Of a stretch of DNA of 64,000 nucleotides, positions 6,001-54,141 are shown in pieces. Each line of letters begins with the position of its first letter. Positions within the stretch are counted from its first letter, which is position 1. The stretch comes from Auanema rhodensis (taxonomy: Eukaryota > Animalia > Nematoda). Made by a program: the position numbers and the translations under genes. The notes under the pieces are model-generated. The model searched no databases and had not been told where the DNA came from. It worked only from the letters and a program-made list of their open reading frames with translations. The stretch lies in the NCBI GenBank assembly GCA_964057225.1, contig OZ059900.1, positions 5,456,001 through 5,520,000 of the forward strand. Direction: 5' to 3'.

Positions 6001-7169
6001 TTATGTGAACAGTTAACTATACCACCTAAGTATCCGAAGAAAGTGATCTTGATTTGTAACTCGGTGCCCGTTAAAGATAGAAGAATACTGTACATTTTAA
6101 TAAATTCTCCATGGCCATCTTAGACTAAAAACACTATCTTATTGTGTTTGATGCATGGTAGCCAGGACTTCCAATTTTATGTGAACAGTTAGCTATACCA
6201 CCTAAGTATCCGAAGAAAGTGATCTTGATTTGTAACTCGGTGCCCGTTAAAGTTAGAAAAATACTGTACATTTTAATGAATTCTCCATGGTCATATTAGT
6301 CTAAAAACACTATCTTATTGTGTTTGATGCATGGTAGCCAGGACTTCCAATTTTATGTGAACAGTTAACTATACCACCTAAGTATCTAAAGAAAGTGATC
6401 TTGATTTGTAACTCGGTGCCCGTTAAAGATAGAAAAATACTGTACATTTTAATGAATTCTCCATGGTCATATTAGTCTAAAAACACTATCTTATTGTGTT
6501 TGATGCATGGTAGCCAGGACTTCCAATTTTATGTGAACAGTTAACTATACCACCTAAGTATCTAAAGAAAGTGATCTTGATTTGTAACTTGGTGCCCGTT
6601 AAAGATAGAAGAATACTGTACATTTTAATAAATTCTCCATGGTCATATTAGTCTAAAAACACTATCTTATTGTGTTTGATGCATGGTAGCCAGGACTTCC
6701 AATTTTATGTGAACAGTTAACTATACCACCTAAGTATCCGAAGAAAGTGATCTTGATTTGTAACTTGGTGCCCGTTAAAAATAGAAGAATACTGTACATT
6801 TTAATGAATTCTCCATGGTCATATTAGTCTAAAAACACTATCTTATTGTGTTTGATGCATGGTAGCCAGGACTTCCAATTTTATGTGAACAGTTAACTAT
6901 ACCACCTAAGTATCTAAAGAAAGTGATCTTGATTTGTAACTCGGTGCCCGTTAAAGATAGAAAAATACTGTACATTTTAATGAATTCTCCATGGTCATAT
7001 TAGTCTAAAAACACTATCTTATTGTGTTTGATGCATGGTAGCCAGGACTTCCAATTTTATGTGAAGAGTTAACTATAACACCTAAGTATCCGAAGAAAGT
7101 GATCTTGATTTGTAACTCGGTGCCCGTTAAAGATAGAAGAATACTGTACATTTTAATGAATTCTTCATG
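1..7169. repeat. 176-bp tandem satellite, left segment (~41 monomers, open at the window edge)
   Basis: GCCAGGACTTCCAATTTTATGTGAAC recurs at 1, 177, 353 and onward; monomers differ only by a few recurrent substitutions. Confidence 0.99.
7164..7169. repeat. Left target-site duplication TTCATG
   Basis: The same 6-mer flanks both ends of the element (also 23792-23797), and the satellite resumes in register after it; 6-bp TSDs are typical of Polintons. Confidence 0.97.
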
Positions 7170-26700: not shown

Positions 26701-29700
26701 CCTAAGTATCTAAAGAAAGTGATCTTGATTTGTAACTCGGTGCCCGTTAAAGATAGAAGAATACTGTACATTTTAATAAATTCTCCATGGTCATATTAGT
26801 CTAAAAACACTATCTTATTGTGTTTGATGCATGGTAGCCAGGACTTCCAATTTTATGTGAACAGTTAACTATACCACCTAAGTATCCGAAGAAAGTGATC
26901 TTGATTTGTAACTCGGTGCCCGTTAAAGATAGAAGAATACTGTACATTTTAATGAATTTTCCATGGCCATATTAGTCTAAAAACACTATCTTAATGTGTT
27001 TGATGCATGGTAGCCAGGACTTCCAATTTTATGTGAACAGTTAACTATACCACCTAAGTATCTAAAGAAAGTGATCTTGATTTGTAACTCGGTGCCCGTT
27101 AAAGATAGAAGAATACTGTACATTTTAATGAATTCTCCATGGTCATATTAGTCTAAAAACACTATCTTATTGTGTTTGATGCATGGTAGCCAGGACTTCC
27201 AATTTTATGTGAAGAGTTAACTATACCACCTAAGTATCCGAAGAAAGTGATCTTGATTTGTAACTCGGTGCCCGTTAAAGATAGAAGAATACTGTACATT
27301 TTAATGAATTCTCCATGGTCATATTAGTCTAAAAACACTAACTTAATGGGTTTGATGCATGGTAACCAAGACTTCCAATTTTATGTGAACAGTTAACTAT
27401 ACCACCTAAGTATCCGAAGAAAGTGATCTTGATTTGTAACTCGGTGCCCGTTAAAGATAGAAGAATACTGTACATTTTAATAAATTCTCCATGGCCATCT
27501 TAGACTAAAAACACTATCTTATTGTGTTTGATGCATGGTAGCCAGGACTTCCAATTTTATGTGAACAGTTAGCTATACCACCTAAGTATCCGAAGAAAGT
27601 GATCTTGATTTGTAACTCGGTGCCCGTTAAAGTTAGAAAAATACTGTACATTTTAATGAATTCTCCATGGTCATATTAGTCTAAAAACACTATCTTATTG
27701 TGTTTGATGCATGGTAGCCAGGACTTCCAATTTTATGTGAACAGTTAACTATACCACCTAAGTATCTAAAGAAAGTGATCTTGATTTGTAACTCGGTGCC
27801 CGTTAAAGATAGAAAAATACTGTACATTTTAATGAATTCTCCATGGTCATATTAGTCTAAAAACACTATCTTATTGTGTTTGATGCATGGTAGCCAGGAC
27901 TTCCAATTTTATGTGAACAGTTAACTATACCACCTAAGTATCTAAAGAAAGTGATCTTGATTTGTAACTTGGTGCCCGTTAAAGATAGAAGAATACTGTA
28001 CATTTTAATAAATTCTCCATGGTCATATTAGTCTAAAAACACTATCTTATTGTGTTTGATGCATGGTAGCCAGGACTTCCAATTTTATGTGAACAGTTAA
28101 CTATACCACCTAAGTATCCGAAGAAAGTGATCTTGATTTGTAACTTGGTGCCCGTTAAAAATAGAAGAATACTGTACATTTTAATGAATTCTCCATGGTC
28201 ATATTAGTCTAAAAACACTATCTTATTGTGTTTGATGCATGGTAGCCAGGACTTCCAATTTTATGTGAACAGTTAACTATACCACCTAAGTATCTAAAGA
28301 AAGTGATCTTGATTTGTAACTCGGTGCCCGTTAAAGATAGAAAAATACTGTACATTTTAATGAATTCTCCATGGTCATATTAGTCTAAAAACACTATCTT
28401 ATTGTGTTTGATGCATGGTAGCCAGGACTTCCAATTTTATGTGAAGAGTTAACTATAACACCTAAGTATCCGAAGAAAGTGATCTTGATTTGTAACTCGG
28501 TGCCCGTTAAAGATAGAAGAATACTGTACATTTTAATGAATTCTTCATGGTCATATTAGTCTAAAAACACTAACTTAATGGGTTTGATGCATGGTAACCA
28601 AGACTTCCAATTTTATGTGAACAGTTAACTATACCACCTAAGTATCCGAAGAAAGTGATCTTGATTTGTAACTCGGTGCCCGTTAAAGATAGAAGAATAC
28701 TGTACATTTTAATGAATTTTCCATGGCCATATTAGTCTAAAAACACTATCTTATTGTGTTTGATGCATGGTAGCCAGGACTTCCAATTTTATGTGAACAG
28801 TTAACTATACCACCTAAGTATCTAAAGAAAGTGATCTTGATTTGTAACTCGGTGCCCGTTAAAGATAGAAGAATACTGTACATTTTAATGAATTTTCCAT
28901 GGCCATATTAGTCTAAAAACACTATCTTAATGTGTTTGATGCATGGTAGCCAGGACTTCCAATTTTATGTGAACAGTTAACTATACCACCTAAGTATCTA
29001 AAGAAAGTGATCTTGATTTGTAACTCGGTGCCCGTTAAAGATAGAAGAATACTGTACATTTTAATGAATTCTCCATGGTCATATTAGTCTAAAAACACTA
29101 TCTTATTGTGTTTGATGCATGGTAGCCAGGACTTCCAATTTTATGTGAAGAGTTAACTATACCACCTAAGTATCCGAAGAAAGTGATCTTGATTTGTAAC
29201 TCGGTGCCCGTTAAAGATAGAAGAATACTGTACATTTTAATGAATTCTCCATGGTCATATTAGTCTAAAAACACTAACTTAATGGGTTTGATGCATGGTA
29301 ACCAAGACTTCCAATTTTATGTGAACAGTTAACTATACCACCTAAGTATCCGAAGAAAGTGATCTTGATTTGTAACTCGGTGCCCGTTAAAGATAGAAGA
29401 ATATTGTACATTTTAATGAATTTTCCATGGCCATATTAGTCTAAAAACACTATCTTATTGTGTTTGATGCATGGTAGCCAGGACTTCCAATTTTATGTGA
29501 ACAGTTAACTATACCACCTAAGTATCTAAAGAAAGTGATCTTGATTTGTAACTTGGTGCCCGTTAAAGATAGAAGAATACTGTACATTTTAATAAATTCT
29601 CCATGGTCATATTAGTCTAAAAACACTATCTTATTGTGTTTGATGCATGGTAGCCAGGACTTCCAATTTTATGTGAACAGTTAACTATACCACCTAAGTA

Positions 29701-32700
29701 TCTAAAGAAAGTGATCTTGATTTGTAACTTGGTGCCCGTTAAAGATAGAAGAATACTGTACATTTTAATAAATTCTCCATGGTCATATTAGACTAAAAAC
29801 ACTATCTTATTGTGTTTGATGCATGGTAGCCAGGACTTCCAATTTTATGTGAACAGTTAACTATACCACCTAAGTATCTAAAGAAAGTGATCTTGATTTG
29901 TAACTTGGTGCCCGTTAAAGATAGAAGAATACTGTACATTTTAATAAATTCTCCATGGTCATATTAGACTAAAAACACTATCTTATTGTGTTTGATGCAT
30001 GGTAGCCAGGACTTCCAATTTTATGTGAACAGTTAACTATACCACCTAAGTATCTAAAGAAAGTGATCTTGATTTGTAACTTGGTGCCCGTTAAAGATAG
30101 AAGAATACTGTACATTTTAATAAATTCTCCATGGTCATATTAGACTAAAAACACTATCTTATTGTGTTTGATGCATGGTAGCCAGGACTTCCAATTTTAT
30201 GTGAACAGTTAACTATACCACCTAAGTATCTAAAGAAAGTGATCTTGATTTGTAACTTGGTGCCCGTTAAAGATAGAAGAATACTGTACATTTTAATAAA
30301 TTCTCCATGGTCATATTAGACTAAAAACACTATCTTATTGTGTTTGATGCATGGTAGCCAGGACTTCCAATTTTATGTGAACAGTTAACTATACCACCTA
30401 AGTATCTAAAGAAAGTGATCTTGATTTGTAACTCGGTGCCCGGTAAAGATAGAAGAATACTGTACATTTTAATGAATTCTCCATGGCCATATTAGACTAA
30501 AAACACTATCTTATTGTGTTTGATGCATGGTAGCCAGGACTTCCAATTTTATGTGAACAGTTAACTATACCACCTAAGTATCTAAAGAAAGTGATCTTGA
30601 TTTGTAACTTGGTGCCCGTTAAAGATAGAAGAATACTGTACATTTTAATAAATTCTCCATGGTCATATTAGTCTAAAAACACTATCTTATTGTGTTTGAT
30701 GCATGGTAGCCAGGACTTCCAATTTTATGTGAACAGTTAACTATACCACCTAAGTATCTAAAGAAAGTGATCTTGATTTGTAACTTGGTGCCCGTTAAAG
30801 ATAGAAGAATACTGTACATTTTAATAAATTCTCCATGGTCATATTAGACTAAAAACACTATCTTATTGTGTTTGATGCATGGTAGCCAGGACTTCCAATT
30901 TTATGTGAACAGTTAACTATACCACCTAAGTATCTAAAGAAAGTGATCTTGATTTGTAACTTGGTGCCCGTTAAAGATAGAAGAATACTGTACATTTTAA
31001 TAAATTCTCCATGGTCATATTAGACTAAAAACACTATCTTATTGTGTTTGATGCATGGTAGCCAGGACTTCCAATTTTATGTGAACAGTTAACTATACCA
31101 CCTAAGTATCTAAAGAAAGTGATCTTGATTTGTAACTTGGTGCCCGTTAAAGATAGAAGAATACTGTACATTTTAATAAATTCTCCATGGTCATATTAGA
31201 CTAAAAACACTATCTTATTGTGTTTGATGCATGGTAGCCAGGACTTCCAATTTTATGTGAACAGTTAACTATACCACCTAAGTATCTAAAGAAAGTGATC
31301 TTGATTTGTAACTTGGTGCCCGTTAAAGATAGAAGAATACTGTACATTTTAATAAATTCTCCATGGTCATATTAGACTAAAAACACTATCTTATTGTGTT
31401 TGATGCATGGTAGCCAGGACTTCCAATTTTATGTGAACAGTTAACTATACCACCTAAGTATCTAAAGAAAGTGATCTTGATTTGTAACTTGGTGCCCGTT
31501 AAAGATAGAAGAATACTGTACATTTTAATAAATTCTCCATGGTCATATTAGACTAAAAACACTATCTTATTGTGTTTGATGCATGGTAGCCAGGACTTCC
31601 AATTTTATGTGAACAGTTAACTATACCACCTAAGTATCTAAAGAAAGTGATCTTGATTTGTAACTTGGTGCCCGTTAAAGATAGAAGAATACTGTACATT
31701 TTAATAAATTCTCCATGGTCATATTAGACTAAAAACACTATCTTATTGTGTTTGATGCATGGTAGCCAGGACTTCCAATTTTATGTGAACAGTTAACTAT
31801 ACCACCTAAGTATCTAAAGAAAGTGATCTTGATTTGTAACTTGGTGCCCGTTAAAGATAGAAGAATACTGTACATTTTAATAAATTCTCCATGGTCATAT
31901 TAGTCTAAAAACACTATCTTATTGTGTTTGATGCATGGTAGCCAGGACTTCCAATTTTATGTGAACAGTTAACTATACCACCTAAGTATCTAAAGAAAGT
32001 GATCTTGATTTGTAACTTGGTGCCCGTTAAAGATAGAAGAATACTGTACATTTTAATAAATTCTCCATGGTCATATTAGTCTAAAAACACTATCTTATTG
32101 TGTTTGATGCATGGTAGCCAGGACTTCCAATTTTATGTGAACAGTTAACTATACCACCTAAGTATCTAAAGAAAGTGATCTTGATTTGTAACTTGGTGCC
32201 CGTTAAAGATAGAAGAATACTGTACATTTTAATAAATTCTCCATGATCATATTAGTCTAAAAACACTATCTTATTGTGTTTGATGCATGGTAGCCAGGAC
32301 TTCCAATTTTATGTGAACAGTTAACTATACTACCTAAGTATCTAAAGAAAGTGATCTTGATTTGTAACTTGGTGCCCGTTAAAGATAGAAGAATACTGTA
32401 CATTTTAATAAATTCTCCATGGTCATATTAGTCTAAAAACACTATCTTATTGTGTTTGATGCATGGTAGCCAGGACTTCCAATTTTATGTGAACAGTTAA
32501 CTATACCACCTAAGTATCTAAAGAAAGTGATCTTGATTTGTAACTTGGTGCCCGTTAAAGATAGAAGAATACTGTACATTTTAATAAATTCTCCATGGTC
32601 ATATTAGTCTAAAAACACTATCTTATTGTGTTTGATGCATGGTAGCCAGGACTTCCAATTTTATGTGAACAGTTAACTATACTACCTAAGTATCTAAAGA

Positions 32701-35700
32701 AAGTGATCTTGATTTGTAACTTGGTGCCCGTTAAAGATAGAAGAATACTGTACATTTTAATAAATTCTCCATGGTCATATTAGTCTAAAAACACTATCTT
32801 ATTGTGTTTGATGCATGGTAGCCAGGACTTCCAATTTTATGTGAACAGTTAACTATACCACCTAAGTATCTAAAGAAAGTGATCTTGATTTGTAACTTGG
32901 TGCCCGTTAAAGATAGAAGAATACTGTACATTTTAATAAATTCTCCATGGTCATATTAGTCTAAAAACACTATCTTATTGTGTTTGATGCATGGTAGCCA
33001 GGACTTCCAATTTTATGTGAACAGTTAACTATACCACCTAAGTATCTAAAGAAAGTGATCTTGATTTGTAACTTGGTGCCCGTTAAAGATAGAAGAATAC
33101 TGTACATTTTAATAAATTCTCCATGGTCATATTAGTCTAAAAACACTATCTTATTGTGTTTGATGCATGGTAGCCAGGACTTCCAATTTTATGTGAACAG
33201 TTAACTATACCACCTAAGTATCTAAAGAAAGTGATCTTGATTTGTAACTTGGTGCCCGTTAAAGATAGAAGAATACTGTACATTTTAATAAATTTTCCAT
33301 GGTCATATTAGTCTAAAAACACTATCTTATTGTGTTTGATGCATGGTAGCCAGGACTTCCAATTTTATGTGAACAGTTAACTATACCACCTAAGTATCTA
33401 AAGAAAGTGATCTTGATTTGTAACTTGGTGCCCGTTAAAGATAGAAGAATACTGTACATTTTAATAAATTCTCCATGGTCATATTAGTCTAAAAACACTA
33501 TCTTATTGTGTTTGATGCATGGTAGCCAGGACTTCCAATTTTATGTGAACAGTTAACTATACCACCTAAGTATCTAAAGAAAGTGATCTTGATTTGTAAC
33601 TCGGTGCCCGTTAAAGTTAGAAGAATACTGTACATTTTAATGAATTCTCCATGGCCATATTAGTCTAAAAACACTATCTTATTGTGTTTGATGCATGGTA
33701 GCCAGGACTTCCAATTTTATGTGAACAGTTAACTATACCACCTAAGTATCCGAAGAAAGTGATCTTGATTTGTAACTCGGTGCCCGTTAAAGTTAGAAGA
33801 ATACTGTACATTTTAATGAATTCTCCATGGCCATATTAGTCTAAAAACACTATCTTATTGTGTTTGATGCATGGTAGCCAGGACTTCCAATTTTATGTGA
33901 ACAGTTAGCTATACCACCTAAGTATCTAAAGAAAGTGATCTTGATTTGTAACTCGGTGCCCGTTAAAGTTAGAAGAATACTGTACATTTTAATGAATTCT
34001 CCATGGCCATATTAGTCTAAAAACACTATCTTATTGTGTTTGATGCATGGTAGCCAGGACTTCCAATTTTATGTGAACAGTTAGCTATACCACCTAAGTA
34101 TCCGAAGAAAGTGATCTTGATTTGTAACTCGGTGCCCGTTAAAGTTAGAAGAATACTGTACATTTTAATGAATTCTCCATGGTCATATTAGTCTAAAAAC
34201 ACTATCTTATTGTGTTTGATGCATGGTAGCCAGGACTTCCAATTTTATGTGAACAGTTAGCTATACCACCTAAGTATCCGAAGAAAGTGATCTTGATTTG
34301 TAACTCGGTGCCCGTTAAAGTTAGAAGAATACTGTACATTTTAATGAATTCTCCATGGCCATATTAGTCTAAAAACACCATCTTATTGTGTTTGATGCAT
34401 GGTAGCCAGGACTTCCAATTTTATGTGAACAGTTAGCTATACCACCTAAGTATCCGAAGAAAGTGATCTTGATTTGTAACTCGGTGCCCGTTAAAGTTAG
34501 AAGAATACTGTACATTTTAATGAATTCTCCATGGTCATATTAGTCTAAAAACACTATCTTATTGTGTTTGATGCATGGTAGCCAGGACTTCCAATTTTAT
34601 GTGAACAGTTAACTATACCACCTAAGTATCTAAAGAAAGTGATCTTGATTTGTAACTCGGTGCCCGTTAAAGATAGAAGAATACTGTACATTTTAATAAA
34701 TTCTCCATGGTCATATTAGTCTAAAAACACTATCTTATTGTGTTTGATGCATGGTAGCCAGGACTTCCAATTTTATGTGAACAGTTAGCTATACCACCTA
34801 AGTATCCGAAGAAAGTGATCTTGATTTGTAACTCGGTGCCCGTTAAAGTTAGAAGAATACTGTACATTTTAATGAATTCTCCATGGTCATATTAGTCTAA
34901 AAACACTATCTTATTGTGTTTGATGCATGGTAGCCAGGACTTCCAATTTTATGTGAACAGTTAACTATACCACCTAAGTATCTAAAGAAAGTGATCTTGA
35001 TTTGTAACTCGGTGCCCGTTAAAGATAGAAGAATACTGTACATTTTAATAAATTCTCCATGGTCATATTAGTCTAAAAACACTATCTTATTGTGTTTGAT
35101 GCATGGTAGCCAGGACTTCCAATTTTATGTGAACAGTTAGCTATACCACCTAAGTATCCGAAGAAAGTGATCTTGATTTGTAACTCGGTGCCCGTTAAAG
35201 TTAGAAGAATACTGTACATTTTAATGAATTCTCCATGGTCATATTAGTCTAAAAACACTATCTTATTGTGTTTGATGCATGGTAGCCAGGACTTCCAATT
35301 TTATGTGAACAGTTAACTATACCACCTAAGTATCTAAAGAAAGTGATCTTGATTTGTAACTCGGTGCCCGTTAAAGATAGAAGAATACTGTACATTTTAA
35401 TGAATTCTCCATGGTCATATTAGTCTAAAAACACTATCTTATTGTGTTTGATGCATGGTAGCCAGGACTTCCAATTTTATGTGAACAGTTAGCTATACCA
35501 CCTAAGTATCCGAAGAAAGTGATCTTGATTTGTAACTCGGTGCCCGTTAAAGTTAGAAGAATACTGTACATTTTAATGAATTCTCCATGGCCATATTAGT
35601 CTAAAAACACTATCTTATTGTGTTTGATGCATGGTAGCCAGGACTTCCAATTTTATGTGAACAGTTAGCTATACCACCTAAGTATCTAAAGAAAGTGATC

Positions 35701-37711
35701 TTGATTTGTAACTCGGTGCCCGTTAAAGTTAGAAGAATACTGTACATTTTAATGAATTCTCCATGGCCATATTAGTCTAAAAACACCATCTTATTGTGTT
35801 TGATGCATGGTAGCCAGGACTTCCAATTTTATGTGAACAGTTAGCTATACCACCTAAGTATCCGAAGAAAGTGATCTTGATTTGTAACTCGGTGCCCGTT
35901 AAAGTTAGAAGAATACTGTACATTTTAATGAATTCTCCATGGTCATATTAGTCTAAAAACACTATCTTATTGTGTTTGATGCATGGTAGCCAGGACTTCC
36001 AATTTTATGTGAACAGTTAACTATACCACCTAAGTATCTAAAGAAAGTGATCTTGATTTGTAACTCGGTGCCCGTTAAAGATAGAAGAATACTGTACATT
36101 TTAATAAATTCTCCATGGCCATCTCAGACTAAAAACACTATCTTATTGTGTTTGATGCATGGTAGCCAGGACTTCCAATTTTATGTGAACAGTTAACTAT
36201 ACCACCTAAGTATCTAAAGAAAGTGATCTTGATTTGTAACTTGGTGCTCGTTAAAGATAGAAGAATACTGTACATTTTAATAAATTCTCCATGGTCATAT
36301 TAGTCTAAAAACACTATCTTATTGGGTTTGATGCATGGTAGCCAGGACTTCCAATTTTATGTGAAGAGTTAACTATACCACCTAAGTATCCGAAGAAAGT
36401 GATCTTGATTTGTAACTCGGTGCCCGGTAAAGATAGAAGAATACTGTACATTTTAATGAATTCTCCATGGTCATATTAGTCTAAAAACACTATCTTATTG
36501 TGTTTGATGCATGGTAGCCAGGACTTCCAATTTTATGTGAAGAGTTAACTATACCACCTAAGTATCCGAAGAAAGTGATCTTGATTTGTAACTCGGTGCC
36601 CGGTAAAGATAGAAGAATACTGTACATTTTGATGAACTCTCCATGGCCATATTAGACTAAAAACACTATCTTATTGTGTTTGATGCATGGTAGCCAGGAC
36701 TTCCAATTTTATGTGAAGAGTTAACTATACCACCTAAGTATCCGAAGAAAGTGATCTTGATTTGTAACTCGGTGCCCGTTAAAGATAGAAGAATACTGTA
36801 CATTTTAATGAATTCTCCATGGTCATATTAGTCTAAAAACACTATCTTATTGTGTTTGATGCATGGTAGCCAGGACTTCCAATTTTATGTGAAGAGTTAA
36901 CTATACCACCTAAGTATCCGAAGAAAGTGATCTTGATTTGTAACTCGGTGCCCGGTAAAGATAGAAGAATACTGTACATTTTGATGAATTCTCCATGGCC
37001 ATATTAGACTAAAAACACTATCTTATTGTGTTTGATGCATGGTAGCCAGGACTTCCAATTTTATGTGAAGAGTTAACTATACCACCTAAGTATCCGAAGA
37101 AAGTGATCTTGATTTGTAACTCGGTGCCCGGTAAAGATAGAAGAATACTGTACATTTTGATGAATTCTCCATGGCCATATTAGACTAAAAACACTATCTT
37201 ATTGTGTTTGATGCATGGTAGCCAGGACTTCCAATTTTATGTGAAGAGTTAACTATACCACCTAAGTATCCGAAGAAAGTGATCTTGATTTGTAACTCGG
37301 TGCCCGGTAAAGATAGAAGAATACTGTACATTTTGATGAACTCTCCATGGCCATATTAGACTAAAAACACTATCTTATTGTGTTTGATGCATGGTAGCCA
37401 GGACATCCAATTTTATGTGAACAGTTAACTATACCACCTAAGTATCCGAAGAAAGTGATCTTGATTTGTAACTCGGTGCCCGGTAAAGATAGAAGAATAC
37501 TGTACATTTTGATGAACTCTCCATGGTCATATTAGTCTAGAAACACAATCTTATTCTGTTTGATGCATGGTAGCCAGGACTTCCAATTTTATGTGAACAG
37601 TTAACTATATCACCTAAGTATCTAAAGAAAGTGATCTTGATTTGTAACTCGGTGCCCGTTAAAGATAGAAGAATACTGTACATTTCAATGAATTCTCCAT
37701 GGCCATATTAG
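23792..37711. repeat. 176-bp tandem satellite, right segment (~79 monomers; first 6 bp are the TSD)
   Basis: Same monomer, in register with the left segment; the last monomers are more diverged; ends abruptly at ...GGCCATATTAG. Confidence 0.99.
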
Positions 37712-39843
37712 AAGTCTTACTTTTTAGTCGTTATTGAAACATTTCTTGTCAAAGTCTATCTTCTTAGTTGTTATTCACATATTTCTTTAGCAAAGTCTAT
37801 CTTCTTAGTTGTTATTCACATATTTCTGAGGGTAAGTCTCACTTCTTAGTTGTTATTGACACATTTCTTTGGCAAAGTCTTACTTCTTAGTTGTTATTGA
37901 CATATTTCTTTCGCAGAGTCTATCTTCTTAGTTGTTATTCACAAATTTCTTTGGCAAAGTCTATCTTCTTAGTTGTTATTGACACATTTCTTTGGCAAAG
38001 TCTTACTTCTTAGTTGTTATTGACACATTTCTTTGGCAAAGTCTTACTTCTTAGTTGTTATTGACACATTTCTTTGGCAAAGTCTATCTTCTCAGTTGTT
38101 ATTCACACATTTCTTTGGCAAAGTCTTACTTCTTAGTTGTTATTGACACATTTCTTTGGCAAAGTCTTACTTCTTAGTTGTTATTGACATATTTCTTTGG
38201 CAAAGTCTATCTTCTCAGTTGTTATTCACACATTTCTTTGGCAAAGTCTATCTTCTTAGTTGTTATTCACATATTTCTTTGGCAAAGTCTATCTTCTCAG
38301 TTGTTATTCACACATTTCTTTGGCAAAGTCTATCTTCTTAGTTGTTATTCACATATTTCTGAGGGTAAGTGTCACTTCTTAGTTGTTATTGACACATTTC
38401 TTTGGCAAAGTCTTACTTCTTAGTTGTTATTGACATATTTCTTTGGGTAAGTCTTACTTTTTAGTTGTTATTCACATATTTCTTTGGCAAAGTCTATCTT
38501 CTTAGTTGTTATTGACACATTTCTTTGGCAAAGTCTTACTTCTTAGTTGTTATTGACACATTTCTTTGGCAAAGTCTTACTTCTTAGTTGTTATTGACAC
38601 ATTTCTTTGGCAAAGTCTATCTTCTTAGTTGTTATTGACACATTTCTTTGGCAAAGTCTATCTTCTCAGTTGTTATTCACACATTTCTTTGGCAAAGTCT
38701 TACTTCTTAGTTGTTATTGACACATTTCTTTGGCAAAGTCTTACTTCTTAGTTGTTATTGACATATTTCTTTGGCAAAGTCTATCTTCTCAGTTGTTATT
38801 CACACATTTCTTTGGCAAAGTCTATCTTCTTAGTTGTTATTCACATATTTCTTTGGCAAAGTCTATCTTCTCAGTTGTTATTCACACATTTCTTTGGCAA
38901 AGTCTATCTTCTTAGTTGTTATTCACATATTTCTGAGGGTAAGTGTCACTTCTTAGTTGTTATTGACACATTTCTTTGGCAAAGTCTTACTTCTTAGTTG
39001 TTATTGACATATTTCTTTGGGTAAGTCTTACTTTTTAGTTGTTATTCACATATTTCTTTGGCAAAGTCTATCTTCTTAGTTGTTATTGACACATTTCTTT
39101 GGCAAAGTCTTACTTCTTAGTTGTTATTGACACATTTCTTTAGCAAAGTCTATCTTCTTAGTTGTTATTGACACATTTCTTTGGCAAAGTCTTACTTCTT
39201 AGTTGTTATTGACATATTTCTTTCGCAGAGTCTATCTTCTTAGTTGTTATTCACATATTTCTTTGGCAGAGTCTATCTTCTTAGTTGTTATTCACATATT
39301 TCTGAGGGTAAGTCTCACTTCTCAGTTGTTATTCACATATTTCTTTGGCAGAGTCTATCTTCTTAGTTGTTATTAACACATTTCTTTGGGTAAGTCTTAC
39401 TTTTTAGTCGTTATTGAAACATTTCTTGTCAAAGTCTATGTTCTTAGTTGTTATTAACACATTTCTTGTCAAAGTCCATCTTTTTAGTTGTTATTCACAT
39501 ATTTCTTAGGGTAAGTCTTACTTCTCAGTTGTTATTCACATATTTCTTTGGCAAAGTCTATCTTCTTAGTTGTTATTGACACATTTCTTTGGCAAAGTCT
39601 TACTTCTTAGTTGTTATTGACATATTTCTTTGGGTAAGTCTTACTTTTTAGTTGTTATTGAAACATTTCTTGTCAAAGTCTTTCTTCTTAGTTGTTTTTC
39701 ACATATTTCTTGTCAAAGTCTATCTTCTTAGTTGTAATTAACACATTTCTTGTCAAAGTCCATCTTTTTAGTTGTTATTCACATATTTCTTCGGGTAAGT
39801 CTTACTTTTTAGTTGTTATTGAAACATTTCTTGTCAAAGTCTT
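37712..39843. repeat. 41-bp minisatellite (~52 units) with a 574-bp (14-unit) higher-order duplication
   Basis: Unit AAGTCTTACTTCTTAGTTGTTATTGACACATTTCTTTGGCA; identical ORF-track peptides at 38156/38730 and 38178/38752 are offset by 574 = 14 x 41. Confidence 0.97.
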
Positions 39844-39898
39844 TTTGTATTTTTTATTTTTTTGTAGAAATAATGAATAATGTATTTTTGTAGAAATA

Positions 39899-42800
39899 AT
39901 GAATAAAGGTGGCCGCCCCAGAAAAGTGCTGCACTGGAAAACAAAAGCAAAATGTGTTGTCGCCGCTCAATCGTTCTAATTTTTCTGCTTTTTTTTAAGT
40001 GAAACAATTGCAAAATTCTGATAATGTCTCAACAAGTGAGTATGTTCCTGACCAATACATTGACAGTTTCATTGCTCCAAGCAATGAAAATGTCCAATTA
40101 TGCAATAAAGAAACTTATAATGATTTCGCACAGAAGGAATTAGTTTATTATGAGAGTAAGATTCCGTTGTTCTCACATTACTTATAATTTTTTTGAGAGT
40201 TTACTGGTTGGAAACTTGAACCTGCAAAGAAGGTGGTCAGCGAAAGTTTTAAAAAATTTGATTCCCATGTCGGTTACTGCTTTATATGCTTGAAATTTTC
40301 GTCAAATTTGAAACGACACTTAGTACCCCCTCCTTTTATTCTGATCTTACATAATATTTTTCAGAAAACACATTTAAATTGTTCAGGGCTAGATAATGGT
40401 GATAAGCTTGTTTACAATTTTCTCACTTATTCGAAGTTGAAAGAAAACGAAATTAGGATCAAGTTTTTGGAAAATCGGTTCATAAACAAAGAACTTTTTT
40501 TGTCTTTAACTGAAACAGTATCACCAAGAAACAAAGCAGTTCTCATTGAAGAGCTCGAAAAGTGCTTCAAAATATTATCATTTTTGTTTCAGTCTTCCTC
40601 TATAATTTAGGGTTGGGATCATATTCACACCTATGTGTTCCCGAACTTCTTTGACAAGTAGTATCTGGGATTTCACAGAAAAACAATCTTTTATGCTAAC
40701 CAGTGAAGAAACTAGCTCGACAGATGAAAGTCTTGAGTTAGAGGTATTGCTTAGGTGCAACTTTTATATACTCTATATTTCAAGAGGCTAATTTGTTGTC
40801 CGGTTTGTAATGAAGATGAATATACTATCGAAGTACCTCTTGGCAGAACCACAAGAACTGCTCGAAGTGCATTATCAACACATAATTTGAATAAAATGTT
40901 AATCATTGGGAAGCAACCACTTCTTTTTAAAATAATTGAACATATATCGCAATATGGATTGAAAGGAGAATCTTTTTATGGAGATAGTTTTGTGGTAAGG
41001 TTTTCTTCTTAGTTTTCAAGCTTCTTCTTTTTTATAGGCAAAGGCAAAAAACTCAAAACAAATTGGAACTGAAATAGTGAACTCAGTCTCTAAAATACTA
41101 TTATTCACATTTCGATTAAGAAAGGCAAAAATTTTTGAAATTCAAAATGTTTCTGAGCTAGATATACCATCAATATGCCAAGCTATAAACACTTATTATT
41201 TTCTCTATCTTAAGGTTATTAAGACAATTAAACTTTTCATTATCACGATTTACAGATTTATGACCGAGGGTCGATAATCAATTTTTTACGAAATATAGAA
41301 AGCTTTATTAGCATTTTGCCCGAAGTGTTCCCGTGAGATGGAATTGAAGCCGAAATTTTAAAACAGTTTGATTATTTCAGTGGCATGACAAGTTCTTTGA
41401 ATTACGTCACGAATGAAGCATTAATAGTACGCCGACTACAGTTTTTGAAAGCTAGAGTTTCTGCTGTGAGTTACTACTAACAAAATTACGATTAAAACTT
41501 TTGATTTAGAAAAATCTTATTAGCGACAGTTTTGCGCGCCATTCAAGAACAATACACTCTTACAAATATCTTTATGATATTTGTCAACCAATAAAGCGTT
41601 GGTTAAAAGAAATGATAGAAAGAAATAAGTGAGTTGTCTCACAAAACATTCAAGTTATATAAAAATAATATTATAGTTTGAGTGATTTGAAGAAACCCAC
41701 TTTGTTCAGAAGATTGGGAGCTGCTATCAATCTTCTCATCTTATTGGAAAATGGTCAACGACCAGAAGTACTAAGCAACAGTTAACAAAATTTAAATCGG
41801 ATTTTTAAGATTGCATATAAGTTACGTTACGAAGATTACAAGAAAATGGAAAAAATACCAAAAATAAGTGAACATAAATTTTACTTACCATTTCCCTTTA
41901 ACAAGTCTAGTCAATCAAATATGCAGGTACTTGATTAATCGAAATTGGTATGAGTGTCACAACTACTCCAGATTATCTTATCCGAAGAATTAGCTGATAT
42001 TCTTAACACTTATGTGAAAATTAGAATTGAAATGAGCCCTATAGGTATTTGTTTGGGTAGAACGTTTGATAAGTTTATATTTAGTTGAGAATCAATCAAA
42101 TTTACTTTTTACAAACTCAGATGGGAATTGCTTGAAAAATCTTATGCGAAGTGTAAGCTATAACTAGTTTTAAAACCGTTCATTCTTTTTTTAAGATCAG
42201 AGATATAGACAGATTTTATTTAAAAACTGGAAAGTTTGATGATTGGACTTTTCTTGCAGTACGAAACGCTGCTACTAACACAGAAGTAGGAGCTTTTTTA
42301 AATCTTGATTCTTCAAGGTTACCTGATGAATTGTTTCCTGCTGTTGGTTCAATGGGTCATTCTAAGAATATACACATACGGGTTTATACAAATATGTTTC
42401 AAAAATTCTATGTACTTTTTGTTTCAGCGATATCTGACGAATTCGGTGTACATAGCTAATATTGCTCATTCCTGGTTATTGAAAACGGCCATGCAAAGCG
42501 ATCCGTCTAACAATAATAATTTGAGCTGTTTGAATGATTTGTTTCAAGTAACGATAAGTTATTAAAAATTATGTACATATTTCTCAATACAGGACATTCC
42601 CCAAGATATCAATGAAGATCAAATGTCCTATTCCAATGAGAAAAACGAAAAAGAAATCGTTAGTTCGAATCGTGATTATTTAATCTTTTTTTTTTATAGC
42701 AGTCAACGACAATAGAAGATAACTGTCCCAATAATGATGATTGTACTCGTATTATCACACCGAAAAGCTGCATAATGAACGTTACTGAGCCTGTAGTCGA

Positions 42801-44466
42801 TGTTCAAAAAACGAATGATGCGAAAAAAATCGATTCTGTCGACATCAGTTCAGATAGTTCAAGAACGAAAACATTAAGAAATAGACATTCAGACAACAGG
42901 TCTTCAAGAATGACGTTTTCTGATGAAAATAGAGCAATTATAAAGTACAATATCCAGGTTATATCAAATATACATATTCAAATAATAAAATTGTAAATCA
43001 AATACCAATTTCAGGTTCTTTCAGCGTGTTTCAAAAATTACGATGGTGAACCAATGTCGATTTTGCTTAATGTAGTTGATGAGCAAATTGTTTCTAAGTC
43101 GGACACGAGACTGGTTAATTTTGCTACTAACAACTGGCCTTTGATTATCACAAAACCGTCAAAGTTGCCATCACTGATTAATACCGGGATTGGTTTTTCT
43201 TACTAGATTAACTTCATTAATTCAAAATATTTAGGAGTTTATGCATTAAAAAATATTGAACAAGGTACAGATGTTACAGCTTACTATTCAATTCAATTGG
43301 GAAACAAGCAAGAGTTAAGGTTTGATCTGGAAACAACAACAAACCTTATAAAAATTTGTATCTTTAGATCCAAAATTTCGCAACTAACAACAGACACATA
43401 CAGATTGTTTTATGAAAATAACGTAGCGTATGGTCATGTTGCTCTTGGCATTGAAACAAGTTTGGGTAAGTGAATTTCTGTAGTTTTCGGCTAAAGCTTC
43501 TTACTCAGTAAACGAAAATAAAATGAAACGACTAGCAGGACCAATTATAAACCATAGTTTGTTACACACAAATGTTAAAGTCAATGTTGAAAACTTGTTA
43601 CCTGAATATAAAACAGGTGAGTACAGGACACTATGATCTGTAATAAATATTTTGTTAAAGATGAAATAAAAAGCATGCTTGTGATGACTACAACTCGTGA
43701 AATCTTGAAAGGTGAACAATTGCTATGGTGCTACGTGCAAGAAAGAGATGCAAAAAGTGTAGATATACCGTACTTTTATGTGTGTCCTTGTGAAAAATGT
43801 TTGGGTAGATGCTTGTGTAAGAAATGCAAAGGAAAGATATATCACGACTTTAATATATCAGAAACTCGAACGAAAATTTTGACAAATTTTGTAGATGACG
43901 GGGTATTAAAATTATACATTAATTATTTAATTGTTTCTTTTCAGAAGGCCAAAACTTATACGATGAACTTGGAACAAATGCTCCTCTTGATATTAAAAAA
44001 CAGCAAAACGCGAAATGAAAGACAGGTAATGAAAAACAAATATAAAAATCAGGTGATAGTTTAGATGCGGAGTGCGAGTCTGGACAAAATAAAAAAACTT
44101 GTGGAAAGTTACACACAAACAAACTTCAATAAAAAACAATATGAAACATTTTTGAATAGCATTGTTGAAAATCAAATATTAGAATTGGTAGAATTAATTG
44201 TTTCAAAAGTGAAGGAATGCTTTCAAAATGAGAAAGCAGTGGTTACAGCAATTATTGACCTAATAGTGCCACTATTTGGAACATCGTTTATCATGATAAG
44301 ATCAGATACTATTATGGAATTTGTAGAAACAGCTAATAACTATGATAATACAGTTAGAGTGTATATGTTTGAAATATCTTGTTCTAATATTACTTTGTAC
44401 GAATTAGTACGCTTGGATAACATTGATCAATATGATAATTTGTTAACAATTTCATGTTCCTTCTAG
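39899..44466 (+). CDS. 25-exon AT-hook / C2H2-like finger / tyrosine recombinase / SET-domain fusion protein, ~1168 aa
   Basis: Exons 39899-39953, 40000-40155, 40198-40322, 40365-40561, 40611-40743, 40785-40994, 41038-41214, 41256-41332, 41381-41465, 41510-41628, 41677-41767, 41810-41926, 41972-42044, 42085-42152, 42196-42381, 42428-42547, 42593-42658, 42700-42957, 43015-43192, 43235-43319, 43368-43465, 43509-43616, 43661-43902, 43945-44025, 44065-44466 splice without stops. Motifs: GGRPRK; CFIC..NLKRHLKTH; NGQRPEIAYKLRYED; LFTNSDG; TFLAVRNAAT; MGHSKNIHIRRY; TGIGVYALKNIEQG; GPIINHS; REILKGEQLLWCY; CPCEKC..CLCKKC. Confidence 0.85.
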
Positions 44467-44645
44467 AAATATAGTTATGTAGTTTATTGTTGTACAAACA
44501 AGCCTGCCTCGAATACATAGTTTTATTGTTTTAAGTTTGAGTTATATTTTTTCTGAAGTGTTTGAATATTTTATGTTGCATAGAAGTGTTGTTGCTGATA
44601 AAATATTTTTGGTTATGCAACTTTCACATGAACTTGTTTAGAAAT

Positions 44646-45572
44646 TTTTATAAAATTTCAAGTATGTTCATAACTAGAGGTAATACAGTGTTAGTTAAAA
44701 GTAATACAATTTTCGTGCAGGCTCAGCCTTAGCAGTAATAAAACTTCTATTTTCAAGTTATGAACATCACATTGGAGTCATATATAACACTTCTATTTTA
44801 TACACTTAACACAAAACACAATAACACTTCTATTTTCAAGTTATGAACATCACATTGGAGTCATATAACAGGTTTGTTCATTCATATTATAAGTAGTTGA
44901 AAAAATTGTAATAGAAAGAAAATGTTCGACAGCACATTGTAAAAACTAGATGACTTTCTCACAAAACAGATCTCATCTCATAAGTCTTATTGATGATACA
45001 TTTGCTATCTCTCCTTTTATCTCTCATAATCTCGTTAACATTGAAGAATATTTTCTGAAAAATGAGAAAAAGAATATTTCTCTGAATATCTTTTCATCAC
45101 GAAAATTTAAAAAAATACTTTTTTAATCTTATTGATATATCAATCTTGAATTAGAGAGTTTCTAAAGGCATGTGTTAAAATGGTATAAAGATTTTCACTA
45201 TGACTAGGAATGTTTTATAAAATTTCAAGTATGTTCATAACTAGACGTAATACAGTGTTAGTCAAAAGTAATACAATTTTCGTGCAGGCTCAGCCTTAGC
45301 AGTAATAAAACTTCTATTTCCAAAGTTATGAACATCACATTGGAGTCATATAACAGGTTTGTTCATTCATATTATAAGTAGTTGAAAAAATTGTAATAGA
45401 AAGAAAAAGTTCGACAGCACATTGTAAAAACTAGATGACTTTCTCACAAAACAGATCTCATCTCATAAGTCTTATTGATGATACATTGCTATCTCTCCTT
45501 TCATCTCTCATAATCCCGTTAACATTGAAGAATATTTTCTGAAAAATGAGAAGAAGAATATTTCTCTGAATA
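44646..45572. repeat. Direct repeat pair (44646-45088 and 45213-45572)
   Basis: Near-identical ~360-bp blocks beginning TTTTATAAAATTTCAAGTATG; the first copy carries an extra ~80 bp that includes an internal duplication. Confidence 0.92.
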
Positions 45573-46045
45573 ACAAAGTCAGGAGCATCAAGCTAGAGCC
45601 ACGTAAGCGGCTCATTATTTTTTTCAGCCGTAAATGTTCTTTTGTTGAGTATTTCCATAGGGCGTTTACAGAAACAAATGACAACTGAGACTAAGTGAAT
45701 GCGAATTCTACGTAAATGCACGCTTGATTGTATTGCATTCCTGAATGAAAATAGTATTTTTAAATCCTATAATTAATTTAATCTTTGTCCTCAATCCTCC
45801 GATTTGGAATACATAGAAAGTTATAACATTTGGTCATTATAGCATTATATTTGTGATCCCACTATGAATGTGGTGGCTCAGCATGTCACCAAGATATATT
45901 TGTTTAGTTAGGTTTGTGGTAGTAGTTCATTTCAGTATTCACATTTTCATTTCTTATTAATCACTTGCGTATCTTGTTATCTATTTTTGGATGTTTTGCT
46001 CTCTCAACTATGTATTCATTTTAGACATTATATTTTTACTGGAAA

Positions 46046-48475
46046 ATGGATAAACAATTTTTTTGCTTGTCCATGATTTTATCTTGTGTAGTTTTTGCGT
46101 TCTCATCAAACATTTTACAAGAAAGTGTTTGTGGACTTAATTCATTTCCTTACCGGATAAGTATTAATAGAAATGGAACTCCAGGTTATTTTTAATTTTA
46201 ACTGAATTAGGAAAATGTATAATATTTTAGATCTACTATGCGCTAAACCAAGTTGCCAACTCGAACAATATGATCAAGTATTTAACTTTTATGAATTAAT
46301 TTTTGTTCTACTTTTCCTTTTTCTAAGAAGTGTGACTCATTTATGGAAACAGTGTGCGATGGTCTTTCACAATACACGTCAGGAATATCAGAAGTCAATA
46401 ATGGAACACATATCACGTATGTTCATCATTATAACATTTGTTCACTTGGTTTTCGTATATACAGCTTAAAAACCCAGTGTTGTGAGTTACAGTGGAAAAA
46501 CCGAGGAACTATTATCAGAGAATTCCCTCTGAGTAGCGGTGAAATGTATATAGTTCATGTGTCACTAACAGTAATCAGCTAGTCTTATACCTGTTCCAGG
46601 TTTGTAGGTGGATCTAAATTACTAAATGGAATAGAGTACTTTGATATAATCAAAGAAATTAGAAAGCATGTAGCAAAAAAAAGGTAATGCTGTTTGTTAA
46701 TGGATTTTATTCAAGTTGCTTCAGAGTTCAATACGTGATCACAATTATGAGGCTTCATTGTAACTGGTTAGATAAAAGTCAGAATAAACTTTTTGAAATA
46801 ATTTATTTCTGAACTCTTCTTTTTTCTAGAATCAGTAGTAATTCCAGATGTGAAGAAAAATATACGGAGGTATAATGAAAACGGATATGTTACTTTTTTT
46901 GGGAGACAATCACTTTGACAATATTGTATAAATTTTCAGAGTACCTCAAAACTTCTTCAAGATTGTTAAGATTTTTGATAAGAAATCTCCTTCGAGTGGA
47001 AGCTATTACAGAGATCAGTCAAGTTCGCTAACTGTTTTCAGGTTCTATCTAAATTTTTTGTCAGTTTTCCAACTCTTATAGTTAGACATAATCGGCAGAA
47101 TTACAAAAATAAAAAAATTACGCTTGAGAATACTTCACCCTTCGTTAAGTCTAGTTTGACTAATTTACAACACGGAAATGTTTGATATGAAATTAAATTG
47201 ATATGAAAATTGCTGAATTACAGAAAGCACGGGATATGAAGCCTTTAACTGAAAAAAAAATTTATAAGTTCAACGTACTTTCTAATTTAAATAAGCAACG
47301 CGATGAAAGTACTTATAAGAGAACAACAGTTAATAATTTTGATGATACGAACAATCCTCTTTTATATGATACCGCAAAAGCATTCAATGGTAAGTATTGA
47401 TAAATTTAATTTGAAGTGATTGTTATATCAAAAAGTATAAAACTTTATATTTAGTACAACCAGGCCAGAATTTCAAACCATCTCCAGTGGTTGAATATTC
47501 TTATGTTTATCCTAATACACAGGAAGCATATAGTTATGCTGCGGAGTATCCAAACTCACCATATGTTCCAACACATTTTAACTCTTATGTTCCTTCTTAC
47601 ACCTATAATAATGGCCTAAATACAATTTTCAATCGTATGCAATGTTTTAGTGGCAGAACTCAAGTAACATAGTCATATTTTTAATTTTGAGCGAAACATG
47701 TTCAGGTTGAAACCAGTGCTGGCTCAAAATTTATCAAAGACCTAAAAATTGGTGATTTGGTGATGACGGTTGAGGAATCCATGGTGATAGAATTCTTTTG
47801 AAACTTTTTACTGTTAATTTCAGGTAACATACTCTCCGGTGGTTATGTTCCTTCATAGATTGGACAACGAATTAGCAACTTTCATAACTCTAACATTGGT
47901 AAGGATGTGATCGCAATTCTTAATTTTTATATCTTTTATAGGCTAACAGTAATCAACTAAGTTTGACAGAACATCATTTGATTTATGTAACTTTATGCAA
48001 TCAAAACGGCATGCTGCGTTTGATCCCAGCCAAGGTATTTCCATTCATATTAAGTAAAAGCTTTCTGGCACTTTCAAGAATGTACGGATTGGTGACTGTG
48101 TTTTTGTTCTAAATGATCAAAAAGAGCTTCTGAGAAGTATGGTAGTGGATATATCTTCTGTAAGAATAACTTATAATATGTTTCCCGCCTGGTATACTTA
48201 ATTATAGCAAGTTTCTCAACTTTCAGATAACTGACCTCGGTATCTACTCTCCACTTACATTGTCTGGGGATATAATCGTGAACAACGTTTTGACGTCTTG
48301 TCATTCAAATTTGACATTAAAAACATTGCAACAAACTTTTTTTTTGATCTATCGATATTTGCAGTATATTTACAAATTTTTTGTTTTTGAAACAACTAGT
48401 CAGGAATACTTACCGTTCGGAGTTAATTATCTTAGTACTATTATTGATATATTTTTGCCTTCAGCATATTTTTAA
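46046..48475 (+). CDS. wrt-6: Warthog-family hedgehog-related protein (signal peptide, Wart domain, Hint/Hog domain), multi-exon
   Basis: MDKQFFCLSMILSCVVFAFS signal-like N-terminus; CGLNSFPY...LLCAKPSC; Hint domain MQ-CFSG..VET..DLKIGD..VTYSPVVMFLHR..LTEHHLIYV..GIYSPLT..GDIIVNNVLTSCHS. The wrt-6 paralogue call is from recalled similarity and is less certain than the family. Confidence 0.85.
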
Positions 48476-51752: not shown

Positions 51753-54141
51753 CTAAGATTCATCTTCCAGGAGTTGCGTATTGTCTTTTGCTTCCTCGCA
51801 TTTTCCATTATCAGGAACACAGTCAGTTCTATAAATATAAACAATTATGCAGATATGCAGTTGATCTGTACGTTGTTTTTCTCCAACTTGGGATCCATTT
51901 TGGGTGATCAGTTTTATTAATAAGAGGACGAACTGTTGAACGATCAACTTTTCTCAAAGTTATAGGCAACTCCAAAATGTGGATACGTTTGGAAAATCGT
52001 CGAATATCGTGATAAACTCGACGTAATCTTGGTTGTATGACGCTTTGGATCGTATTCTCATCATGTAGATAATTGATTACTTGAGTTATATCATTCGAGA
52101 TTTGGGCCTCAGAAGATTCTTTTTCAACCTGTACTAGTTGTCGTTTCAGCTCATTTTCACAGTTTTGAACTAATAAAGAATTTTCTTTATTACAAATTGT
52201 TTGTTCAACATTCTTCTGCATGAGAGGGCTATCATCTTTTACTTCTGAATAGTTTTCCGTATTCGATGGTATGAGAAGTTGTGTACCTGTTGTTTCGTGA
52301 AGCTGAGCTGCACAACTGAGTATAGAAGTTTTAAGTTTAGTATGCACGCCGTTCTTATGTATATCTATTGATGTAGAAGATATGTTGTCATTTTTTCCAG
52401 TTGAACAGAGTTGTGAGGATGTTAACTTAGTTTTTTTTGATGAGTAACGATTATTTTTTTTACAATTATTCGGTTTATTTTCATATATGAATCCTCCAAT
52501 TATATTTGAGACCTTATTTGAAAATTCTGCATCAGTTGAATTCAAAAAGCTCTCCGGAATTTTTAAGCGATTAATCTTACGTATCTCTTTTGGTTGATCA
52601 CAGGTGTCATTCATATTAAAAGAGTAGTTAAGCTTCCCAACACGCTTAATTTTTTTGAACTTATTGTGTACTATCGTAGAGGACGATTGTTTTTCAATAG
52701 CCAAAATATCAGCTCTAACTAATAGTGTTCTAGGAGGAGCTGGTAAACTTATGCTCGCTGGGTATAGCTTCGGTGTACGCTCTGTTAAACGAAGATTGAG
52801 TCTTACACATTTTTCTGGTATAACTGACTTAGCTACATGAAAAAAACTACAATGTTGTATTGAGATTTCAGCTGCTCTTGTGACATAACGATTTTTCACT
52901 TGATAGTTAGCATCAATCAATTTTTGTTCAATCGTTTGTCCCAAAGGTAATAGCATTTTGCGATGAGTTCGGTTAGGGCGAATGCGAGTAGAGGTTGTTG
53001 AAAAGGTGGCTTTCAATGATATATTAAGGCGACTCCAGCAATATTCAACATTTTCCATTAAATATAAGTCTGGGGGAAAGAATTCTGAATGACATGAGAT
53101 GATAGTTTCCATATTTCCAATTTCAGTCTCAGGATATTCATTTCTCTCGTCAGTTTGAGATGCGATAAAGCTCTGTTCAGCTATATCTTGTTCTGAGCAC
53201 TTATTAACTGAATTATTGCAAATGGAGAACTGGCATGAAAATGATAATTGAAACACATTTTCCATTGAGATAACAGCTTCTGTCATTGAGGTTTGGTTCA
53301 TATGCTTAAGTGTTTCACTCAAATCTATGCGATCTACCTTTTCTTTCATAGTGTTATCCAACTCATGATCCATTGAAAGTCCCGAATCTGAGGAATTACT
53401 TAAAGTTCTGACGTATGGCCATCTGTCAGGTAAACGACAACTGGGAAATGATACGGGATAATTTTGCTCCCAATTTCTTGAGTTTTTTGTTTCGTTTTCA
53501 GCATTGATTCCACGAGATCGCAAAAGTTCATCTACACGATTATGGGCATTGAGAAGACGGTTATAAAAATCTTGTTCTTGAAGGTTCAGTTGTCCATTTC
53601 CCGTAGATTTATAATTTTGTGAATGTGAAGAAACCTCCTGTGTGTAACGCATGAAAGTAGGCTTTTCGGCATTTGTATTAACGCTATTCTTATCATCCGA
53701 AGGAGAGCGATTTGAATTTGTTATGTGTACTACTTTTGTTAATGGTAATACACAGCTTGTTCGTCGTTTGTACTGCATTCCATCCTTGTTTTTACATGTG
53801 TTGCTAGATCCTATTGAGAAAGAACTCTGCTTTGGTATATGGGGAATAAAACGACTACTAAAGCTGGGCCGATTGGAAGAATCCCGACTGCTCTCATGCA
53901 ATGTTTCATATTTCGGAGGCGATATTCCAGACGAAAATTTTCGATTTCGGAAAGAATTGACTTGTGATGATGATGTTAGGGTCTTTTGCGCTTCATCAGC
54001 AGATAATCTGGTGCTCATATTTCCATCGTCAAAGAGTCTAATTGATCTTGAAGAAATTGCTGAGAATGAATTATGTGAGCTTGAAGGTGATGAATAGCTA
54101 CTGTTCGACGTCAAACTCGGATGTTCAAAGCTTGAGTACAT
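51753..54141 (-). CDS. Uncharacterised Ser-rich, probably disordered protein (~780 aa; large exon 51872-54141 plus last exon 51753-51828)
   Basis: A 2.3-kb open frame in AT-rich DNA; a 43-bp GT-AG intron (51829-51871) links it to ..TDCVPDNGKCEEAKDNTQLLEDES*. No domain recognised. Confidence 0.75.

Follow-up and report, generated by a model that had tools for sequence, protein, structure and literature searches.

Positions 39899-44466 (+) of a 64,000-nucleotide stretch of the nematode Auanema rhodensis hold an intact gene that is transcribed and spliced and encodes a multidomain protein of 1168 amino acids (aa). The stretch, called the window below, is taken from assembly GCA_964057225.1 (contig OZ059900.1, positions 5,456,001 to 5,520,000, forward strand), and all coordinates are counted from its first letter. 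The protein opens with a basic N-terminus that carries Cys/His motifs. This is followed by a divergent tyrosine recombinase (YR) region (about aa 446-640), a linker of low complexity, a SET domain (aa 823-960), a Cys-rich cluster and a C-terminal domain. The reading favoured here, with moderate confidence, is that the gene is the recombinase of a Crypton-like family of DNA elements living in tandem-repeat DNA of the genome. The combination of a recombinase-type domain with SET is undescribed, whether the gene belongs to an element or has been domesticated.

The features of the gene are listed by position; strand is given after the coordinates and the evidence in brackets.

39899-44466 (+): whole coding region (own splice model; tblastn on the window).
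39908-39925 (+): AT-hook-like sequence GGRPRK (GRP core, basic flanks), aa 4-9, exon 1 (sequence only).
40278-40373 (+): Cys/His motif C-x2-C-x9-H-x3-H, aa 98-115 (reading of the sequence).
41678-42478 (+): YR-like region, aa 446-640, six exons (PF00589 profile; shuffles).
41732-42137 (+): significantly aligned part of the YR region, aa 464-556 (hmmsearch; hhalign; junction 41767/41810 in RNA).
42253-42433 (+): candidate second-half catalytic residues Leu581, Arg584, His616 and Tyr625 (low-stringency hhalign; global alignments with lambda Int and Cre).
42479-43116 (+): Ser/Asn/Asp-rich linker, aa 641-805 (composition; junctions 42547/42593, 42658/42700 and 42957/43015 in RNA).
43168-43758 (+): SET domain, aa 823-960 (local SET profile; shuffles; language-model features; RNA junctions).
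43783-43827 (+): Cys-rich, post-SET-like cluster, aa 969-983 (sequence).
44065-44463 (+): C-terminal domain of 133 aa, last exon (AlphaFold; PDB, Pfam and protein searches).

Exon structure and transcription

The window is AT-rich (about 32% G+C). Exons were modelled by a dynamic-programming search for GT-AG introns that was blind to the coordinates of an earlier note on this DNA. This independent model reproduces the structure given there: 25 exons separated by 24 GT-AG introns of 39-57 nt and joined into a single frame of 1168 aa. The frame runs from the ATG at 39899 to a TAG stop at 44464-44466 and the acceptors are mostly T-rich. Removal of 21 of the short introns is obligatory for the frame to stay open from ATG to TAG; three additional introns are in frame (40323-40364, 43320-43367 and 43903-43944), and their removal leads to exactly 1168 aa. 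The model protein matches no other locus of the window (tblastn). All motifs quoted in the earlier note were found, in the order that it had given: GRPRK (aa 5) and CFIC (98) in the N-terminal part; NGQRPE (470), FNKS (505), LAVR (581), MGHS (614) and IRRY (622) in the YR region; GIGVYA (829), INHS (905), GEQLLWCY (945) and CPCEKC (969) in the SET region.

RNA evidence comes from three small public runs of one study (X1, X2 and X3), each covering parts of the stretch. Their contigs derive from RNA, since they are spliced. Ten of the 24 junctions are found exactly in these contigs: 41767/41810, 42547/42593, 42658/42700, 42957/43015, 43192/43235, 43319/43368, 43465/43509, 43616/43661, 43902/43945 and 44025/44065. 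An eleventh, 40994/41038, fits a loose contig end. One intron was corrected in this way: the first choice of the model, 41910-41954, was discarded because an RNA contig runs unspliced to 41920, which fixes the intron at 41927-41971.

The last YR exon is physically joined to the SET exons in RNA, as the recombinase-SET fusion claimed in the earlier note demands. In run X1, three overlapping contigs (42455-42855, 42838-43110 and 43084-44417) form a chain that begins in the exon with the proposed Tyr625, crosses the linker and every SET exon and ends in the last exon. Run X3 contains spliced RNA from the exons of box I and of the Lys. Coverage in the three runs is nil over exons 1-4 (39899-40743), 41038-41676 and 41972-42454. 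Because of this, the AT-hook exon, the intron of the finger-like motif and the link from 41920 to 42455 are carried by the open frame.

The tyrosine-recombinase-like region

The profile used was built from 115 non-redundant PF00589 proteins, after the addition of 77 viral integrases selected by the pattern HxLRHTFAT; five sample seeds score PF00589 in Pfam at E 1e-34 to 1e-45. The sequences of XerC and XerD of E. coli, Cre of P1 and lambda Int were taken from annotated records.

Searched on the whole protein, the profile matches aa 464-556 (hmmsearch, 14.7 bits, E 8.2e-7). Box I (Arg473), the hairpin with Lys507, the next helix and the LF..G motif all fall within the aligned stretch. Arg473 is placed in the column of the catalytic Arg-I; Lys507 is one column off the Lys. 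For the region 440-650 the score is 18.3 bits, against a maximum of 9.1 in 5000 shuffles, and five control segments of the same protein give p values of 0.05-0.53. hhalign also relates the YR region to the PF00589 profile (P 1.7e-4), and genuine recombinases outscore decoys for the YR segment of the protein only. These alignments show the first half of the region, including the box I Arg, to be homologous to the phage-integrase superfamily.

The tyrosine recombinase announced in the earlier note stands for its first half (aa 464-556, E 8.2e-7, with Arg473); its second half is not supported, LAVR and MGHS...Y being at chance level. With a score made of blocks from four families, the best colinear path falls on the motifs proposed earlier (p 0.06). 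Low-stringency hhalign places Arg473, Lys507, Arg584, His616 and Tyr625 in register (P 0.056); for the last three, the only other alignments in register are the global ones with lambda Int and Cre. The profile results speak for homology to the recombinase superfamily; catalytic competence is not supported, because the second half is at chance and the His of HxxR is a Leu.

Other searches of this region were null. Single YR exons, too short for such scans, match nothing in Pfam, PHROG, NCBIfam or PDB. Pfam also finds nothing on the exon pieces that cover aa 223-444; as these are short, this is weak evidence for the lack of an N-terminal SAM-like core-binding domain. Aligned with XerC, XerD, Cre and lambda Int, pairwise or globally, the protein gives no significant match, although the register agrees in part. 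Narrow profiles (hidden Markov models of 4 sequences, of XerD only and of 60 Xer-like sequences) find nothing or score about 0-2 bits. Folding of the 62-aa YR exon by itself gives a predicted local distance difference test (pLDDT) of 57, too low for use.

The SET domain and its flanks

SET seeds were viral SET proteins, found by an alignment scan and by the pattern RFINHSCxPN after back-translation; they were confirmed as PF00856 by Pfam (E 2e-20 to 5e-11) and combined in a profile of 21 sequences. This profile matches aa 823-960 over positions 23-126 of 137 (20.5 bits, E 1.6e-8), with GIG (829-831), NHS (906-908) and GEQLLWCY (945-952) all in register. The region 800-990 scores 25.2 bits, which is reached by none of 5000 shuffles (maximum 11.4); the profile is silent on other segments of the protein. 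Protein-language-model features indicate PF00856 for two non-overlapping pieces. Single SET exons, again too short, yield nothing in sequence scans of Pfam or PDB. Five exons carry the domain, and RNA shows all four internal junctions. In the profile alignment, its cofactor-binding motifs and catalytic Tyr are intact.

The SET domain of the earlier note is thus upheld: by its profile match and motifs, this is solidly a real, canonical SET lysine-methyltransferase domain, with all motifs for cofactor binding and catalysis. The cluster behind it is unusual. Its six Cys (969-983) are arranged as two CxCxxC units; the usual zinc site is formed by CxCx4C and the Cys of NHSC, which is replaced here by Leu.

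Viral contigs L245, L247 and L250 (IMG/VR) also encode SET domains, located C-terminally in longer proteins (about 275 aa, counted from the first Met). The N-terminal parts of these viral proteins are conserved between contigs.

Terminal parts of the protein

By direct reading, aa 4-9 present the GRP core and the Arg/Lys flanks of an AT-hook. They are encoded by exon 1, which has a weak donor (GTGTTG) and no RNA support. The Cys/His motif (C-x2-C-x9-H-x3-H) differs from a classical C2H2 finger (C-x2-4-C-x12-H-x3-5-H) in having x9 rather than x12. It is split by the putative in-frame intron 40323-40364, also without RNA support, and its spacing requires the removal of this intron; Pfam finds nothing on the exon piece that carries it. 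Binding to AT-rich DNA, together with a self-written chromatin mark, was an inference of the earlier note and is kept here as such.

The C-terminal domain is predicted to be alpha/beta (AlphaFold, single sequence, pLDDT 67). It matches no PDB entry at E <= 0.001 and no Pfam family, and a word-indexed protein search returned no homologue.

Genomic surroundings

The gene is located at the edge of a 37-kb satellite array. The neighbouring features are as follows.

1-7169 and 23794-37712 (strand not given): 176-bp satellite, copies 97% matching (TRF, blastn).
37712-39858 (unstranded): 41-bp minisatellite, about 52 copies (TRF, blastn, sequence).
39850-39906 (+): duplicated 26-nt segment with the acceptor-like site TTTTTGTAG and an ATG (repeat family D12; sequence reading).
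44641-45572 (unstranded): tandem duplication of about 485 bp, 96-99% identical (repeat families D1-D4; blastn).
47197-48472 (+): multi-exon gene with a Hint module (PF01079).

The 176-bp satellite fills most of the first 37.7 kb, its sole interruption being an insertion of about 16.6 kb. The 41-bp minisatellite lies directly upstream of the gene and ends about 40 nt before the ATG; many of its units contain a donor-like GGTAAGT and an acceptor-like TTTTTAG. Each copy of the 26-nt segment holds TTTTTGTAG, AAATA and ATGAATAA. The ATG of the first copy meets a stop after six codons and that of the second opens the long frame; judged from its sequence, this duplication, over which RNA coverage is nil, is a possible trans-splice acceptor region. 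Downstream, the tandem duplication of about 485 bp begins 175 nt past the stop codon and contains repeated 48-nt units with AATAAA.

A Hint module is recognised in the downstream gene from about 47942 on, and the last pieces of this gene match PF01079 colinearly (59 bits on 48170-48472). The gene looks like a hedgehog-related 'hog' gene; such genes occur in nematodes, and a nematode origin also agrees with the style of the introns. From 39843 to 47197, no other long open reading frame or repeat pair flanks the YR-SET gene, which makes the YR the only candidate mobility enzyme. Rfam finds nothing in the window.

Two further frames were observed. An uninterrupted Ser-rich frame of 770 aa (51829-54141, minus strand) belongs to no Pfam family; its lack of introns is unusual, other genes of the window being cut by many short introns. 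A His-rich repeat frame made of HHHDHHAHHEHKEH units (62868-63587, minus strand) lies over a 45-bp tandem repeat.

Relation to known systems

SETMAR (Metnase) is a single domesticated host gene of primates, made of a SET domain and a mariner transposase. It resembles the present gene in that a SET lysine methyltransferase and a DNA-processing enzyme of a mobile element form one polypeptide. Its partner is of the DDE type and its SET is N-terminal, whereas the partner here is YR-like and SET is C-terminal.

Cryptons (YR-only elements; CryptonF, S, A and I) share several features with this locus: a YR-type protein is the sole enzyme, with no reverse transcriptase; the gene is interrupted by introns; and neither terminal inverted repeats nor long direct repeats are visible. 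CryptonF and CryptonS also carry an extra C-terminal domain, either GCR1_C or a conserved region (PMC3212892). In contrast, no Crypton has been described with SET, and the His of HxxR is a Leu here. The Crypton paper mentions the SET domain 0 times, and its animal Cryptons are without any C-terminal domain (PMC3212892). A 2014 survey of tyrosine-recombinase elements includes no Crypton in Nematoda, where DIRS/PAT are the only YR elements documented (PMC4157794). Nematode DIRS/PAT differ from this gene: their products are Gag, reverse transcriptase/ribonuclease H and, in some cases, a DNA methyltransferase-like domain, and nothing of the kind adjoins the gene.

Host genes derived from Cryptons (DUF3504: ZMYM2-4, QRICH1, KCTD1, WOC) are similar in having an incomplete catalytic set, an intron-rich multidomain protein, zinc-finger-like motifs and chromatin connections (PMC3212892). 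They lack SET and most of the R-H-R-Y tetrad, whereas candidates exist here for three of the four tetrad positions. Fungal Starships are likewise eukaryotic DNA elements with a YR (the 'captain'), and have repeatedly evolved the targeting of genomic niches; the paper discusses ribosomal DNA (rDNA) at length (PMC11162782). They differ in being fungal, with DUF3435-type captains, large cargo and no SET fusion; no cargo is seen in this window.

Full-text literature searches for a recombinase-SET fusion gave nothing relevant. The 62-aa YR exon, compared with 1.84 billion representative proteins, yielded only repeat-protein noise; the SET open frame and the last exon have no match in the word-indexed protein collection; and the YR and SET exons match nothing in viral and metagenome contigs. 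The gene is therefore absent from those collections.

Interpretation

As the recombinase of a Crypton-like element, the protein would act through its several parts. The YR part would cut and rejoin DNA via Tyr625, leading to excision of a circle and to site-specific integration, as proposed for Cryptons; the basic, Cys/His-containing N-terminal part would assist DNA binding; and the SET part would methylate a lysine at the target, either of nucleosomes or of a partner. Such methylation would tether the enzyme to repeat chromatin or lay a repressive mark over the insertion.

The location of the gene at the edge of the satellite array speaks for a mobile element. Several observations weigh against this assignment. 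The second half of the YR region, with the sites of Arg-II, His-II and Tyr, is left unaligned by the PF00589 profile, as are the profile columns of the N-terminal SAM-like core-binding domain. In the position-specific scoring matrix of each block, HxxR gives p 0.38 and H...Y p 0.52, which is chance level and persists with seeds chosen independently of the box II pattern; the His of HxxR is Leu581. No homologue was retrieved with which the candidate catalytic residues could be compared. No element ends, terminal repeats, target duplication or second copy are present within the window, and an ordinary Hint-module gene lies about 2.7 kb downstream, so that the YR-SET gene could equally be a resident host gene. 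RNA depth is low (2-5), exons 1-4 and 41972-42454 are among the uncovered parts, and a shorter transcript may start near 42400.

In the most serious alternative, the gene encodes a domesticated chromatin protein: the YR-derived domain would be catalytically dead and would serve as a DNA- or chromatin-binding module, like DUF3504 in ZMYM2, KCTD1 and WOC, and an active SET would methylate histones at repeat arrays. The Leu in HxxR, the statistically unrecognisable second half of the YR domain, the 24 host-style introns with expression, the normal host gene nearby and the failure to find element termini in the window all point that way. Precedent also exists, Crypton YRs having been domesticated repeatedly with loss of the catalytic tetrad according to Kojima and Jurka (PMC3212892). 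Against it, candidate Arg584, His616 and Tyr625 occur at YR-like spacing and the best block placements fall there, at chance-level scores. Domestication is accordingly rated as possible and rather unlikely.

Improbable, by comparison, is a spurious recombinase similarity, with a SET methyltransferase that carries a long N-terminal region of unrelated fold. Such a protein would account for the null scans of every single YR exon in Pfam, PHROG, NCBIfam and PDB; for the lack of significance in pairwise comparison with XerC, XerD, Cre and lambda Int, and for the null XerD-only profile; and for the 62-aa exon, which looks beta-rich by language-model features and in a low-confidence fold. It is opposed by a PF00589 match of E 8e-7 exactly where the motifs had been predicted, with 0 of 5000 shuffles reaching the score, silent other segments and agreement of hhalign; moreover, library scans require longer pieces than these exons, and the fold of the 62-aa exon, at pLDDT 57, is unusable. 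Most improbable of all are two separate genes or transcripts, a YR-like one upstream and a SET one downstream, merged by the open frame only. RNA depth is indeed concentrated on 42455-44417 and no contig bridges 41920-42455, but the frame is open through all 25 exons, the contig chain begins within the Tyr625 exon and continues via the linker into SET, the upstream YR exons are spliced and transcribed in run X3, and thin RNA data usually show stronger 3' coverage.

Significance

A bolder form of the Crypton-like reading is put forward tentatively: an undescribed family of nematode DNA elements, in which a YR is permanently fused to a histone-type methyltransferase, may home to tandem arrays (rDNA, 5S, tRNA clusters, satellites). 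SET would then read or write the chromatin of the array and so guide integration, or would silence the new copy. If true, this would be a mobile element with its own chromatin writer. Mobile elements can read chromatin, for example by the chromodomains of some integrases, and in SETMAR a host has once fused SET to a dead transposase. If a recombinase brings a lysine methyltransferase of its own, transposition and chromatin would be linked in a different way. The intact, expressed copy is a practical start for cloning and for assays of both activities. The finding would extend DNA-type tyrosine-recombinase elements to nematodes, where none is documented, and could help to account for the ability of elements to occupy rDNA and satellites and leave the host alive.

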